A stretch of DNA of 62,908 nucleotides, counting the filler, from Choristocarpus tenellus KU-1152 (Eukaryota; Protista; Phaeophyceae): NCBI GenBank assembly GCA_964200185.2. It is 9 parts of 9 records of this genome, joined end to end, with 100 filler letters (N's around TTAATTAATTAA, not from the genome) between each part and the next. Parts side by side here need not be neighbours in the genome. Positions count along the whole stretch, not along the records: positions 34,768 to 38,826 come from CAXNAD020016427.1; 8 more parts are not named here. One strand, written 5' to 3'. The notes beneath the pieces were generated by a model, which saw nothing but the letters and a program-made list of their open reading frames with translations, had not been told where the DNA came from and ran no database searches. The position numbers and the translations under genes are program-made. Shown piece after piece: positions 7,513 to 38,826 of this stretch (position 1 is the first letter of the stretch; every line of letters starts with the position of its first letter).

Positions 7513-10500
7513 TCAGGAAACAGCAGGGACTGCCTTACATATATCTTCATACTCCACTCTCTTCAGAGTTTTCCCCTCCTCCACTCCGTCCATCAAAAGC
7601 ACAGAGGCTGAAAAGTTATCGGTGTCCAGGGACAGAAGCTTGCCCCGACAACCACGACCCATTCCGTTCACCACAAGAACCTCCCCCCCCACTGCAGGGA
7701 TGACCTACGATACAATTTTGAAAATGCATTTCGTATCATACAAGTGTTGCGTTATGATAGTAGGTACGGTGGGGTGGGGTTAGGGTTCAAGAGTGAAAAT
7801 CACGAGATCCACGGGGTGCAAGTGGGTGACCTTGTGCTTAAGATGGGCAGTAGTAGGTCCAAACAATGCAAACATGTCAAAATTTTTCGTATCAAGTTTG
7901 AAATCCAAGTATACAGTAGGAGGACTACAGGCATTCTCATTCCACATGAGGTTATGAGACACATTATGGGATTGGTTCATCAATGTGAAGGGGGTTTTCA
8001 GCTCTACCTGGGCTGTTGGGTTTCTTCCCAATACAATCAACACGTATGAACAGTGTTGGACAGGTTCACTCAAATGTGACCTCATGTACTTGAATGCTGT
8101 GTTTGCAACCAAACAATGCTGCCTATCTCAACACAAAAGAAACTTCAGGTAGCATTACAACCACTTTCAGCGCACCTCTTGACCAAAGTAATTTTAATCA
8201 AAGTTGCTTCTCACACTTAACCCACACCATAGCCATGTGAGCGTGTTGCTGGAGAACAATGCATGTATACACAAATACAGAATAGTTCCGTACTTGAAAA
8301 TATTACACTTGAACAGAACAAAGTCACTGTTAGCAAGATGAATTCCCCTGACACTAACCCCATCTTTAACACACCTCACTATTACTTAAAACCAACCGAA
8401 TCAAACCCACGTACCCAATTACGCAGTCAATCTATTTCTGCATAGACTTCCACCAAAAAATAGCACCAATTAAAACCCAAGTTAGCCGTCTGCACATAGA
8501 TACACGAGGCAGTTTTAACAGAAATACGTGTAACTCCATGGTATCAGCATAAGGCAGTTTTAACAGAAATACATATGACTCCATTGGTATCAGCCACTGC
8601 CACAAAGCTATTCTCAACTTACCTCCTCTCCCTCACCTCCCCCCCTTCCCAGTCCATTTCCACAGCTACTGAAAGCTCACCGTCTCTAGGTCGTCCTGGT
8701 CAACCCGAAGCCGATCTCCTTCATCAATTATCTTCACCTCCGCCACATATCGCTCCACCACCTTACGGACCACAGCCTTCCTCTTGTAGTACCGGCCTTC
8801 CCCTACCTTCTTGTTCAACACCTTCACCACAATGCCTGGTCGAAGCCAGTAATCAAAGCGATCCCCCCCCCCCTCCCCTAGTACCCCCTCCCCCCCCCCC
8901 GCCCCCGCCTTCCCATCCCCCGCGCCGCCCCCTTCTGCTCCTCTNNNNNNNNNNGGTCGAAGCCAGTAATCAAAGCGATTCCCCCCCCCTCCACTTGGTC
9001 CGCTTCCTCCCCCTGCAGCCACTGCTACTGATGCGGCTGATGCCTCTGCCTGCGCCTTAGCCTCCTTCCGCTTCCGATCCTCATCCATCAGCACCTCCAA
9101 TGTGCTTCTCTTGCCCTTACCCTTACCCTTACCCTTTCCTCCCGAGTCAAGCCGGCCCCCTTCCTCCATTCCACCGAAAACATCTGCTGTTGCTACAGGC
9201 GGTCGTGGTCGTTTCAAGCTTGTAACAGAGCCGCCCCCCAATCCCAGCTTCATACTCACAGTGCCATCACCCTCCTCCCGTTTGAGCTCTGTGGGGCCCA
9301 GAGCCTCTTTTGAGCCACGCTCCGCTTCTCGTGCTTGTGCTGCACGTACCTGCTGCTCAATAACCTTTGCCTAAAGGGCACCAAGCAATGTGGAGAGGGG
9401 TTTGGGGAAGGAGGTCATGGGGTGAAGTAAGAGCTTGTTCAATTTCAGTTGTTTAAGTATGTTGCTGTGACAGTGGGCATGTGGGGGTCCTCATACTTGG
9501 AGGGGTAGATGCCATTTCATAACCTAGGGGATGAACTGCTTGTGTTAGAGTAAGGCTAACTAAGAAAATCAAAATCTCAGCAAAAGGCTTCCTGCAGTTT
9601 TACAGGGGACTATGTTCATAGACAACTCACAAAGGCTGATGAAATGCCTTGGAGGAATTCTGAAGCATTCCCTTCCCCATCTAGCAACAGCAATCAACTC
9701 CTAACCTTGGTGAACAGAAATAGTTATCACAAAATACTAAGCAGGCAAAGAAAAGTGATGGTCCCAAATGTACATCTTTGAGAAGTTCACTCCCATAGTT
9801 TCCGACAGGCCGAGGACCCCTCGAACGTACTTACACCTATCTTCAATCTTTCTCCAAAAGTCTCATTCGGGGGCTTCTTAAATATGAGTGTTTTCGCATC
9901 CAAAAGGCATCACCACACCTGCATTTCCTCATCATCAAGGTCGGCCTTTTCCCTCTTGGCTGCGGCCTCTTGCATTGCAACAAGACGAGGATCTCTGTCT
10001 ATCCACTTTATGTACCACCCCTTCTCCGTCTCGTCTACTACACATTTTCCCGTCTTCCCGAGGTAGAGCACGAAGGCCGTAAGTGTCTCAAAGTGGGTCG
10101 AGTTCATGTGCGTATGGGTCTTGTGGGCGATGAATTCGTTGTAAACCAGCGAAGCACGGATGCGCTTGGTTCCATGCCTGCGACTGAGCACCTCAAGGAA
10201 CTCCTCCTCGAACACTCTCGAATACTGCCAATCGTCACGGAAAGTTTGGCACGGAAAGTGGATTGAAGCGAAGGCATATGTCGCAAAGGCTGGAAAGAGA
10301 TAAATTGATGCATGTCCCAAAACGGGTAGGGGGGAAGGGTAGGGGTGGTCCTTCTCAGGCGGTGTTGTTCAACGTGCTGAGATTATGATGATGAAAAAAA
10401 CAATACGGATGTCTCAGATATGCCATTCCCTAAGAAATGTGTCCAAAATTACAGAGAGACTGCAATCCACCCACTACAAGCACGAAGAAGAGGAGAGGAT

Positions 10501-34767: not shown

Positions 34768-34791
34768 TTTTTTTTTTTGATGAGCTTGGGT

Positions 34792-34834
<43 letters not shown>

Positions 34835-36145
34835 AGGAGGGATGCCCATGGGAAGCCCATGAAGGTGAGATTCTTCTTTACTCAGTCAGTAGGTATCAGT
34901 CAATTAGAAATAAAAGAGGAGCTCGAACAACCAGATTAAAGCCACTCCAGTATGAATAGGACCACGAGAGGAATTGTTGTACACAGATCCCCTATGCTCA
35001 ACAACTAGGTGTTCGGAGTAAGGATGTAGAAGCTTTGCATCATGGGGTGCACAAGAATCTGAGAATGAATGGAAAGGGGGATGATGTGTGAGGGTCGTTG
35101 AGAGGGATTAAGTTTCAAAGACACCATCCACTCCTGCGCTGAAAGCCTGTGCTTGTCCATTTGGAATACGAATCAGGTCAGCCCTTAGTTCAATATTAGA
35201 TAGGACAAGACATACTTGAGTGGGGTTTTAAAAAAAGAAAATCCATACGGGTTAGGGACATCAACAAAACATTTTAAAATGTTAAAAAAAGAATCTAAGT
35301 AAAATGGATTTCAGTCTGCCATACAATATAAATCAACCTCGATTGACTGTACAGTGTGTTTGATAGGGCTGGGTAAACCAAAAAAAATGTTGAAATGGTT
35401 CCACTACTGGAATAGGCTTTGGACCCATCATTTGACTGAAATATCCACGAAAATATATATATTGATGAGAATACCAGGGTCAGGGCTCACATGAAGACAA
35501 TGTATATAAGGTCATCTGAGTAGGCTCAGACTGTCGACGATTTCCAAGCACATATGTTAAAAATAAATAAAAAAAAAAAAGGACAGCAATCAATAACAGT
35601 CACCTTAAGTCAAACCAGACCCATTTCACCAAGTATTGGACACTGTCTGGTTTGTGGTAAAACTGTCTGGACAGGTTACAATACTTTCTGAAATGTTCAG
35701 ACCAGGGTTACCAGATGTTGTGCTCGGTTCAGGGTCAATCTCCATTCACGTGAATATTAATATTAAAATAGTCAGAAAGGTTTTTGACTATTTAAGGGTG
35801 AAACCGCTCTACATTGTTTCTGACTTGTGACAGGAAGTGGCTGTGGTCGGTGACTTGAAGGAATGTGTAAGAAAACACCTGGCCATTCAAACATGCACTC
35901 TGGGTTAAAAAATGGAGTATTTCAGATTAATTGAAAAATATTTTTCATTATTTATATTCTTATTATTGTTGATATTCGTCTGAAAGGTCCCAGATCCATG
36001 GTCAAAAGAAAGCAATACGCACTGCTTTAGAAATACAAACACCAGCTAAGAAAAACAGTTAAGAGAACCAAGAAGAGGGTTTATCCATGGCTATCGACTA
36101 TTTAGACATGGATGGGACACAGATCGGTCTGGTACTGATAAGTAA

Positions 36146-36312
36146 CTGTCAACATTTCCAGACCATAGGCTGTCCTGGTCTACCACTATATTCTAACAAA
36201 GCTGGTCCATGACTCTCAACTGTCTGTTTCAACATGTCATGGCCACAGGTCACCCAGTGGCCATGACCTGGACCCCAACCATCCTCACTGCCCAGACTTT
36301 TGAAAAGTCCTG
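36146..36312 (-). repeat. Dispersed repeat, homologous to 61785-61970
   Basis: Its reverse complement (CAGGAC.TTTCA..ATGGTTGGGGTC..CATGGCCAC..CCTGTGG..GACATGTTGAAA..CATGGAC..AAATGTTGACAG) aligns with the copy on the last contig. Confidence 0.7.
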
Positions 36313-37552
36313 AAAAAAGTGAGTTTGGAATGCCTTTCTCATTGGGATACAATAGGGGCAAAATGGACCCCGGCACCCCCCCCCCCAGATACTCTGAGCC
36401 AATACTCTATGGGCTGACATGTGGCTGACAGAGGGGGGCCTAGCAATGTGAAATAGGGAGGGTTTTCATATGCATGCAATCATCCACAGCCAACTATGAG
36501 ATGATAAGGGGTGATAGATGTCCTCCACTCAGTAAAGACATCTACAAGAGCAATTATATCGGAGCTATTGCTCTCGCCTGCACTCACAGACCAGCGTATG
36601 TGTGCATGGTTGACCCAATGTACCACCTTGAACATGAGAAAAAGCACAACCACCCTCTTCTGGTTCTAAGTAGAGGCTGAGTCCAGCCTCAAGTCTCTCC
36701 TATGGTCCCCGTTGTTATGGGTCGTACAATGCACTACAAAGTATACAATGTATAACAATCTCCTTGAGAGTTGTGACCTTGCCAACATATTGGTCGAATG
36801 GGAATATGTCCCCCAGCCCGCCTTCCACCTTCAATCACAGCACATGTTGAATGAACTGTGACAACATCAAACCTCCCACAAAGTTGATGGAACATACGAT
36901 AATCATCATACAGGTAGAGTACCTCATGGATATGTTTAGAGTTAGGGTCAGGGATAGGGTTGTACCAAGTTACAAGCATCAAACTTCAAGTTACAACCAT
37001 TGCGCAAGGAGTCACAAGTCCCTCGCAAACTCATGTACAAAAATACAACACAAGGGTGCATCCAGCATCTTCAGCGAGAAGGATGTAGCAAACGTACAAA
37101 CTCGCATGCATCAGGACAAATCAGTAGTATAGATTGTACTCTCTGGATTACACAAAAAGTCCTCTATCAATCAGCAGGGAGGTTATGAAAAAAAAAAACT
37201 CGAATGCAAAAAAGTATTTCCTGTGGAAAAAAATAAATCAGGAGGTGCCACACCTTTGTTGCACAAAATTTTAAATGAACACCAGCATAAAAGGGGGCGA
37301 ATCTTGCTTTCGACATTGTAGTGGGGAAGGGGTGGAACAATGGTAACTACTCTAAATATTTGTGACGTACGAGAGTCGCTTCTTCATATCTACCGTTGTA
37401 CTTCGAACAAAAAAAAGTGCAGTAGAGAGTGCAATTGAACCATTCCAATCAAATGCTGTTCTACAACCTCTCGTAAGAGCAGAAAACAAAAATGATCAAA
37501 TAAATTACTCTGGAGGAATATTATACAATCAAAGAGGTTGTAGCGCAATTGA

Positions 37553-38520
37553 TCACCTCCGATATACCAAGGATCTCATGCCACACATTACTATCCCTAC
37601 AACAAACCCTGTGGCGTTCCCCATCAGTAGCCCCCCCAGCACAGCTGGAAGTGAATCCCCCCTTGATTCTGCAAGCAGCGATGCCGTTGCAGCAGAAGCG
37701 AAGCAACCAAGACCCCATCCTCTTACACCAAAGGCGCCAAACGTCCGACCCAGCTGCATTAGAACACATCCCCCTGCAGAGATGGCGAGGGGTACCAGCC
37801 GCCCCACAGTTCCAGCTCCTATAAGATGTCCTGGGGACGGGCTAAGGGAGGGGCCATACTCATCATACCTTTGATTAATGCAAGGATGAGGAGGTAATCG
37901 CATACGAATGTGGTCAGCGTTTGTTGAAGTAGGCAGGAATGGAACGGGCTCACAGGTTATTGTGCTATGTTTCATTACAAAAATTCTTCCACAGCACCTC
38001 CAGGTCGCAGGGGGTTCACCTAAGATCAAAATTAAGCAAATCAAGCAAACCATTGCCACAACATTGGGGCTCACCTCTTCCGAAGCTTAGGATCGCGCAG
38101 AACCTCGTGGGCCTTCTTCAAGTGACGGAAGACCTCAGGGTCCCCGCCTTTGTCTGGATGTGCTCGAAGACTCGCCTTTCGGTACGCCCTGACCAGCCAT
38201 ATTTGAGGAAGGAGGTCGAGACAACGAAGGAGAAAGAAGGATACAAGCGCCACCCATCAACATCTCCTAGCACTGGCGAGGGTTTAAAGAGATGGAAAAG
38301 AAGCACAACAGGCAACAAGAAATGAATTCTAAGATGAGTTGTTACCCAGCTCAAAGAGGAGCAGAAGGGAGCTGGAAACATCGCATTGATCAATCTATTT
38401 GTAGTCGACGGAATCCATGGCTTCTTGACTGATAAACATCCCATACCTGTCGATATCCTCTGTCGTTGCCATGTGGCATACTCCTAGGGAATCGTAGTAA
38501 CTCACGAACTGTTGAGACAT
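37553..38520 (-). CDS. Small J-domain (DnaJ class C) protein with hydrophobic Gly-rich C-terminus, 3 exons, 167 aa
   Basis: Exons 38520-38447, 38188-38075, 37868-37553 (504 nt). MSQQFVSYYDSLGV..EDIDRAYRKASLRAHPDKGGDPEVFRHLKKAHEVLRDPKLRKRYDEYG with an intact HPD motif. Confidence 0.9.
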
Positions 38521-38706
38521 AGCTCACTGAGGGGGGAACGCAAGCACTCCCTTCCTTTCAATAGTTGCGATGAGGGTGTGTTGAGTATGTGGGTATTATG
38601 GAACGCATGTTTGTCTGTTATTATACCGTTATTGCCGTATGCGATATACCGTTATACCGTGGTACTGAGTGAGGTTCCCAGTCAAGAGTCCATGATTTCA
38701 CATTGA

Positions 38707-38765
38707 CGAGCTTGCTAAGTTCGTGTGCATTGCACGCGTGAGTTCGAATCTCACCGGTGTCGCCA
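38707..38765 (+). tRNA. tRNA-Ser(GCT) 3' fragment (canonical positions 27-76, with CCA); pseudogene/retrocopy
   Basis: Anticodon arm CGAGC-TTGCTAA-GTTCG, long variable arm GTGC-ATT-GCAC, T arm GTGAG-TTCGAAT-CTCAC, 3' acceptor strand CGGTGTC, discriminator G, CCA. No proper D arm or 5' acceptor strand adjacent. Confidence 0.85.
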
Positions 38766-38826
38766 ATGTGAATCGTGTGATTCTGTGGCGGCGTGGTTCA
38801 CTCAGGTAAGGGTGGCGAAGAGAATC

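Follow-up and report, generated by a model that had tools for sequence, protein, structure and literature searches.

A CCA-tailed 3' part of tRNA-Ser(GCU) at the centre of a palindrome in the brown alga Choristocarpus tenellus: a possible insertion scar

Upstream of a DnaJ-domain gene of Choristocarpus tenellus lies the 3' part of a tRNA-Ser(GCU), followed by CCA and flanked by the arms of an imperfect inverted repeat, whose innermost palindrome runs into both ends of the tRNA. The tRNA piece is missing from the orthologous locus of Discosporangium mesarthrocarpum. I propose, tentatively, that the locus is a non-functional insertion scar, derived from a mature tRNA-Ser(GCU) by a one-off event of reverse transcription or DNA repair.

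The locus and its setting

All coordinates are those of the window, that is, the whole stretch of DNA that was analysed (62,908 nucleotides, filler included). Positions 34768 to 38826 of the window are the entire contig CAXNAD020016427.1 (4,059 nt; C. tenellus, assembly GCA_964200185.2). The features on which the argument turns are these:

37553-38514, minus strand: spliced gene for a DnaJ-domain protein of 167 aa (GenBank annotation; Pfam DnaJ match)
38622-38663, plus strand: TATACCGT(T/G) repeated three times in direct orientation, the third copy bordering on the left arm (repeat search)
38663-38705, plus strand: left arm, pairing with 38764-38808; an outer block TACTGAGTGA, then a divergent middle, then an inner block with CACATTG at its end
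38697-38772, no strand: core palindrome with 13-nt arms, the best ungapped inverted repeat of the repeat search
38706-38762, plus strand: tRNA-Ser(GCU), positions 26/27 to 73 (5'-truncated match to the Rfam tRNA model; alignment to metagenome genes)
38763-38765, plus strand: CCA after the discriminator (read from the sequence), of which CA (38764-38765) pairs with TG of the left arm
38764-38808, plus strand: right arm; inner block CAATGTGAATCGTG, middle, outer block TCACTCAGGTA
38779-38804, plus strand: degenerate stretch like positions 1-26 of tRNA-Ser (17/26, ungapped, to intact genes)
38803-38810, plus strand: splice-donor-like CAG/GTAAGG at the foot of the right arm (sequence alone)

The DnaJ gene runs from a start codon at 38514 to a stop at 37553, and its product (P0001) is 100% identical to a record from this same contig. 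The feature under study is placed 149-294 nt upstream of the start codon, on the opposite strand, 149 nt separating the start codon from the left arm, so that the promoter of the host DnaJ gene borders on that arm. Beyond the right arm 18 nt of the contig remain. Comparison of 14 open reading frames of at least 60 aa with Pfam gave a single match, DnaJ, and none to domains of reverse transcriptase, integrase, gag or transposase. A 42-aa open frame that spans the element has no words in common with any protein. The tail of the DnaJ protein is hydrophobic and rich in glycine and alanine, and relatives of the same length and layout occur in Discosporangium (63% identity) and in Logan run SRR23274482 (55%).

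Other peculiarities of the contig may be recorded here. It begins (34768-34833) with 11 T, a few bases and then a run of about 50 G, which looks like an artefact of sequencing or polishing rather than biology. There is a tract of 12 C at 36375-36386. The triplet of TATACCGT(T/G) outside the left arm is possibly a promoter motif, or else a marker of the insertion's left junction. A 21-nt stretch of the first DnaJ intron (38411-38431) is an 81% inverted match to 38679-38699 in the left arm, probably by chance. A match to the start of the plant C/D snoRNA R12 at 38806-38826 on the plus strand was rejected (11.4 bits, E 8, with a poor C box); it spans the last 21 nt, is cut by the contig end, and is probably also due to chance.

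A faithful but truncated tRNA-Ser

The tRNA piece comprises the anticodon arm, a variable arm, the T arm, the 3' acceptor strand and the discriminator G, and has neither a D arm nor a 5' acceptor strand. The anticodon stem CGAGC/GTTCG encloses the loop TTGCTAA, with the anticodon GCT (serine AGY). The variable arm is short, as in eukaryotes, with a stem of 4 bp, the T arm GTGAG/TTCGAAT/CTCAC is canonical, with a perfect B box intact, and the acceptor strand CGGTGTC leads to discriminator G73 and then to CCA. Given 38706-38765 alone, the Rfam tRNA model matches from model position 25 to 71 with 23.5 bits (E 0.0018 for the stretch). Run over the whole contig, the model scores 20.4 bits, and that only by forcing a 36-nt insert at the place of the D arm; both scores fall short of the model's gathering score of 29. 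ARAGORN finds 0 tRNA genes in the contig.

Intact counterparts came from metagenome contigs, scanned with the last 21 nt of the tRNA piece: 12 tRNA-Ser(GCT) genes on 10 marine contigs. From 38738 to 38762, that is, over T arm and acceptor strand, the piece is identical to them in 25 of 25 nt. All five pairs of the anticodon stem differ from those of the metagenome genes, every one of them compensated, and two pairs of the variable stem differ with pairing kept. Because of this identity, and because the stems have changed only in compensated fashion, the piece appears to be a true copy of a functioning tRNA from its own lineage. An earlier note on this DNA had seen in it a 3' fragment of tRNA-Ser(GCT) with anticodon, variable and T arms and no D arm, and the Rfam match and the metagenome genes confirm this. 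The span that the note assigned to it, 38707-38765, is also borne out, apart from the start, which is corrected to 38706/38707.

Beyond its 3' end the piece departs from the genes. The intact metagenome genes are followed by 3' flanks that are for the most part T-rich and whose first base is T or A; the flank of the piece is CCAATGTG, with no T-run terminator. The metagenome relatives offer some further observations: one contig (L010, 109-353) carries tRNA-Ser(GCT) genes in tandem, 81 nt apart, another (L005) carries an inverted pair at 1496-1577 and 8919-9000, 7.3 kb apart, and all of these genes are identical, from which it follows that the gene is multi-copy in that organism. The tRNA-Ser of a third (L011) has a variant D loop.

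Several identities for the piece were tried and rejected. It is not a functional tRNA gene, given that it has no complete cloverleaf in normal order and no T-run, draws no call from ARAGORN and scores with Rfam below the gathering score. A tRNA in normal order whose D arm and anticodon stem are separated by an insert is called by ARAGORN only at its default threshold, which accepts one third of random segments, and so is called no differently from random DNA. A tRNA-derived SINE does not fit, as the B box (38742-38752) lies upstream of the sole A-box-like site (38786-38796) and there is no tail. Nor is it a fragment of a bacterial gene, because the tRNA 3' end with CCA has 0 matches across the prokaryotic genomes of 185,579 species. 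Viral contigs gave 0 matches to the tRNA end with CCA and 0 to the inner block of the arms.

A palindrome that reaches into the tRNA

As DNA, the arms are identical at 36 of 50 positions when the left is compared with the reverse complement of the right, making an imperfect repeat of about 47 bases. The similarity is uneven: the inner block is about 81% identical, the outer block is perfect over 10 nt, and a middle of about 13 nt is unrelated. The minimum-energy fold joins the arms by 42 pairs, 36 Watson-Crick and 6 G-U, in agreement with the imperfect inverted arms and the several G-U pairs that the first description had reported. On the plus strand, 38655-38815 folds with -69.5 kcal/mol (z -5.5, with 0 of 200 dinucleotide shuffles as good), as against -47.5 kcal/mol on the minus strand (z -3.2 against such shuffles). 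With the tRNA head swapped for a tetraloop, the arms give -42.8 kcal/mol (z -5.8) on the plus strand and -26.5 (z -3.6) on the minus. A comparison of the arms with shuffled controls had been asked of this locus from the start, and they fold far better than the controls do.

The strand difference invites the thought that the locus makes an RNA. Transition mismatches between the arms, read on the plus strand, are 5 G-U against 1 A-C (p ~0.06-0.2). As proof of an RNA this bias was rejected, 5 against 1 not being significant, and the better plus-strand fold is at most suggestive of an RNA or of mutation linked to transcription. A putative functional element, RNA from the plus strand or DNA, seems to me improbable. 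It might be a long hairpin with a tRNA-like head, serving as a small-RNA precursor or as a structure in the 5'-UTR of a divergent neighbour, or it might be a B-box/TFIIIC site that has been retained to insulate divergent genes from each other. Such a role would suit the superior fold of the plus strand, the intact T arm with its B box and the splice-donor-like site at the hairpin foot. It is countered by the insignificance of the G-U excess and by the lack of the structure at the Discosporangium locus.

The core palindrome bears more directly on origin. Its halves, 38697-38709 and 38760-38772, are complementary at 12 of 13 positions, and they do not stop at the borders of the tRNA: CGA (tRNA positions 27-29) faces TCG (71-73), and the CA of the CCA is paired with TG of the left arm. 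The junctions of the tRNA piece look like microhomology joints, or like a 3' end folded back on itself. Since CA belongs to the palindrome, only C74 is independent evidence of a CCA tail. The earlier note had concluded from the encoded CCA and the lack of a terminator that a mature tRNA was copied; this is reasonable, though weakened by the fact that CA is palindromic. The reach of the palindrome into the ends of the tRNA, together with the 5'-like stretch described next, is an anatomical detail new beyond that note.

A degenerate 5'-like stretch

The right arm contains, 13 nt after the CCA, a stretch that resembles positions 1-26 of tRNA-Ser. Its ungapped score of 17/26 is the unique maximum in the contig on both strands (the runner-up has 14), and a score of 17 is reached nowhere in 54 kb of two other algal loci. 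The stretch includes an A-box-like TGGCGGCGTGG, one base off consensus (10/11) by eye, and its 12-23 pair is changed on both sides. A gapped local score of 18 occurs about once per 7.7 kb of background, giving p ~0.01-0.02 in a neighbourhood of 120 nt. The Rfam tRNA model has no match on it. When the 3' part is joined to the 5'-like stretch in a permuted construct, ARAGORN reports a tRNA-Ser with its threshold raised to 105% of the default, and none at 110%; at 105%, 7% of random segments give at least one call and <2% give as many calls. No working tRNA can come of the 5'-like stretch, because it would have a U4-U69 mismatch and C11-U24, and because A14 and A21 are both replaced. The left arm has a weaker 5'-like stretch, which does not surpass random DNA.

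It is conceivable, if quite unlikely, that the locus is a rearranged tRNA-Ser locus in decay, made from tandem genes or from a circular or dimeric tRNA that was copied back into DNA, its outer parts since lost. The remnant (3' part, 16 nt, 5' part) would then have the order of a circularly permuted tRNA gene that no longer works. The arrangement 38706-38762, 16 nt, 38779-38804 is indeed all on one strand. The 5'-like stretch stands in the right place, with its 17/26, its A box and its compensated 12-23 pair, and ARAGORN accepts the construct at the 105% threshold. Tandem tRNA-Ser genes are known in a metagenome relative (L010), and an origin of permuted genes by duplication and loss has been published as a model (PMC3978253). 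Against this stand the U-U mismatch in the acceptor stem, the broken 11-24 pair and the lost A14 and A21. The partners of the leader are the linker and the 5' part instead of a trailer, no bulge-helix-bulge (BHB) motif is evident, and the trailer is only 22 nt long before the contig ends. The 3' part is intact and the 5' part 35% diverged, Rfam sees no 5' part at all, the gapped match reaches no better than p ~0.01-0.02, and both the CCA and the palindrome go unexplained.

The orthologous locus in Discosporangium

The closest relative of the DnaJ protein is that of Discosporangium mesarthrocarpum, whose gene faces a kinesin gene across 409 nt. Neither this locus (L001) nor the Logan contig with a more distant DnaJ homologue has a tRNA-like match. 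The intergenic regions of Choristocarpus and Discosporangium have no overall alignment, and the sole word of at least 8 nt that they have in common is GTGAATCGTG, from the inner block of the right arm, in the same orientation. Its 8-nt core, GAATCGTG, occurs twice in L001 (9631-9638 and 9874-9881, minus strand), both times between the DnaJ and kinesin genes and nowhere else in the 18.7 kb of that locus, and once at the equivalent place in Choristocarpus (38770-38777 of the window, plus strand). It is a candidate for a cis-element common to the divergent promoter. Because GTGAATCGTG recurs in the Discosporangium intergenic region in the same orientation, the comparison is weak evidence for native promoter DNA in the right arm, with the left arm and the tRNA piece as a later insertion. 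In reverse complement, the left arm too can be aligned to that place in L001 (p ~0.03).

A possible insertion scar

How might such a structure have arisen? I suppose that a break occurred in the region upstream of DnaJ, leaving a DNA 3' end complementary to the last six bases of the tRNA (UCGCCA). This end would anneal to a CCA-tailed mature tRNA-Ser, and a polymerase capable of reverse transcription would extend it from position 70 down to 27, where N2,N2-dimethyl-G26 would halt synthesis. Two outcomes can be imagined. The new end, ..TCG, may snap back on CGA and copy about 45 nt of the flank in inverted form, producing the left arm; or it may join, by 3 nt of microhomology, to the other half of a pre-existing palindrome that had been broken at its centre. 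In either case the arms would since have diverged to 72% identity. What is observed is the identity and limits of the tRNA piece, the inverted repeat, its reach into the tRNA ends and the lack of the piece in the related genus; the RNA template, the stop at a modified base, the priming end and the snap-back are inferred. The base m2,2G26 is present in human tRNA-Ser and blocks reverse transcriptases (PMC11831618). In HIV-1, DNA synthesis runs deep into the primer tRNA when the usual stop at m1A58 is missing (PMC8599865).

This reading is favoured by the identity of the tRNA piece to intact genes in 25 of 25 nt and its compensated stems, by the lack of its CCA-bearing 3' end in the prokaryotic genomes searched, by where the tRNA piece begins, at position 27, directly after the putative m2,2G block, and by what it contains: no D arm, 5' strand or T-run, and C(CA) where genes have T/A-rich flanks. 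It is favoured as well by the core palindrome, complementary at 12 of 13 positions as microhomology or snap-back predicts, by the lack of the tRNA piece at the Discosporangium ortholog, by the GTGAATCGTG that this locus has in common with the right arm, and by a contig without proteins of mobile elements. It also accounts for the position of the tRNA piece at the exact centre of the palindrome.

Much can be said on the other side. There is a single locus, and the account was constructed after the fact. The 5'-like stretch (p ~0.01-0.02) is left over, as chance or a later patch, and a single snap-back does not predict arms with unrelated middles. That the tRNA part should be intact between arms with 16-28% difference would have p ~0.05-0.1 if decay were equal. 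A stop at m2,2G26 is an assumption, both as regards brown algae and as regards the native base 26. The homology to Discosporangium is weak (p ~0.03-0.1). Finally, the C. tenellus DNA examined for further copies was this one contig, which stops 18 nt past the right arm, and the structure may yet belong to a repeat family.

Mobile elements and artefacts

The earlier note had offered three origins: an LTR junction, an element that captures or targets tRNA, and a structured RNA with a tRNA-like head. None of the three was demonstrated. The junction of two LTRs I regard as unlikely. On the minus strand an LTR would end in ..ATTCACA and be followed by a T, a primer-binding site extended to 59 nt and the start of a second LTR, TGTGAAATC..; plus-strand strong-stop synthesis would have read through the tRNA-Ser primer to position 27, and what is seen would be the junction of an integrated circle, a tandem junction or captured strong-stop DNA. 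Copies beside gag/pol, with a short TGGCGACACCGG site, are then to be expected. The TG..CA ends are there, with a terminal inverted repeat of 8-9 bp, and so is TGG one base after the CA (..ATTCACA T TGGCGACACC.. on the minus strand), and the contig breaks off 18 nt past the arm, much as assemblies do at repeats. Where m1A58 is lacking, synthesis is known to continue beyond the usual stop (PMC8599865), and an end at 27 fits the next hard block (PMC11831618). The rest of an LTR element was not seen: neither the arms nor their flanks are repeated directly in 4 kb, in a contig that ends shortly past the arm, Pfam finds no gag/pol domain in the 14 reading frames of the contig, and there is no polypurine tract, as had been noted before, the bases ahead of TGTGAAATC on the minus strand being mixed (AGCTCGTCAA). 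Furthermore, an inverted repeat of 45 nt or more that runs into the primer-binding site is foreign to LTR ends, there would be room for no more than 190 nt of left LTR ahead of the start codon of the host DnaJ gene, and the motif that the right arm has in common with the orthologous promoter of Discosporangium argues for native DNA. Alternatively, the arms may be the ends of a short foldback element, like a TIR element or MITE, with a tRNA core, or facing termini of elements (CAATGTGAA..) that flank a piece of a target tRNA gene, which I consider improbable. In the arms the inner block is well preserved and the outer block perfect over 10 nt, and GTA stands directly outside both outer blocks as a possible 3-bp target duplication. 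CAATGTGAA occurs three times in the contig (0.11 expected), and at 36444 it is again followed downstream by CACTCAGTA on the same strand: the exact inner 11-mer CAATGTGAAAT lies at 36444-36454 and the outer 9-mer CACTCAGTA at 36526-36534, plus strand, in the order and orientation of an arm. However, the spacing at this third site is 82 nt rather than 34 and its alignment is not significant (32 of 500 shuffles); an element from 36444 to 38705 would enclose the conserved host DnaJ gene, without a target-site duplication; and the contig encodes no transposase.

Two ideas about this neighbourhood were discarded: a second palindrome at 36344/36444 folds no better than shuffles, and the 5' part of the tRNA, looked for left of 36444 as the other half of a gene split by an element, gives an ordinary local score of 11. 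It would be very surprising if the whole were an assembly artefact at a contig end, from a chimeric or foldback read. An artefact might well leave a short contig that opens on poly-T and a 50-nt poly-G and breaks off 18 nt past the arm, as this one does. Foldback artefacts are perfect palindromes about a sharp centre; the arms here are 72% identical around a unique core of 57 nt.

What the locus may mean

If the locus is a scar, it is probably a single neutral event. It would nonetheless document, on a small scale, how a polymerase brought a mature, modified tRNA into a chromosome, with a copy that begins where m2,2G26 would halt synthesis and with microhomology and an inverted copy of the flank at the junctions. 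Students of DNA repair and reverse transcription would find this of some interest in brown algae, where, to my knowledge, neither has been described. It would matter much more if it proved to be a family of repeats, an expressed RNA, or a lineage of permuted tRNAs outside red and green algae. There is a slim chance that the 3' part of tRNA-Ser, the CCA, the 13 nt and the degenerate 5' part, all within a plus-strand hairpin, make up an expressed tRNA-derived element of brown algae, either a permuted tRNA-like RNA or a mobile family of hairpins that uses or mimics tRNA-Ser, or else belong to a retroelement whose primer site extends to position 27. An expressed element or a retroelement with so long a primer site would be the first such in stramenopiles. 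For annotation the consequence is simple: the locus is not a tRNA gene and ought not to be counted as one.

Comparison with known systems

Permuted tRNA genes have the same order, 3' part, short spacer and 5' part, and class II tRNAs, Ser included, are among the cases. They are known only from Cyanidioschyzon merolae, prasinophytes, the Bigelowiella nucleomorph and Thermofilum pendens (PMC3978253), and not from stramenopiles. Their known breaks fall at 20/21, 37/38, 50/51 and 59/60, unlike the 26/27 that a break would have here, and in eukaryotes they have no CCA, whereas the present locus has CCA, a degenerate 5' part and no evident BHB motif. The tailless tRNA retropseudogenes of mammals are similar in being partial reverse-transcribed copies of tRNAs, truncated at structural landmarks (PMC5322556). 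Yet those copies keep the 5' end whole, lack part of the 3' end and lie between target-site duplications (PMC5322556); in the piece here it is the 3' end that is whole and the 5' end that is cut short, and no duplications are evident.

The copy of a primer-binding site is normally made by copying the 3' end of the tRNA up to a modified base (PMC8599865). In retroviruses and Ty elements, as here, the complement of the tRNA 3' end, CCA included, starts one base after CA. The site is at most 18 nt long in those elements and 59 nt here, and where they have an LTR repeat, a polypurine tract and gag/pol, none of these was found here, the flanks being a 45-nt inverted repeat that takes in the ends of the tRNA.

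The insertion scar proposed here also has analogues in DNA repair. Filler insertions at repaired breaks include the capture of cDNA in yeast and the snap-back templated insertions made by polymerase theta. For brown algae I know of nothing comparable. As proposed for the present case, foreign sequence is brought in through microhomologies of 3-6 nt, along with an inverted copy of the adjacent flank; with a tRNA as template, an insert of 57 nt and an inverted copy of 45 nt, the locus would stand at the long end of the range that has been described.
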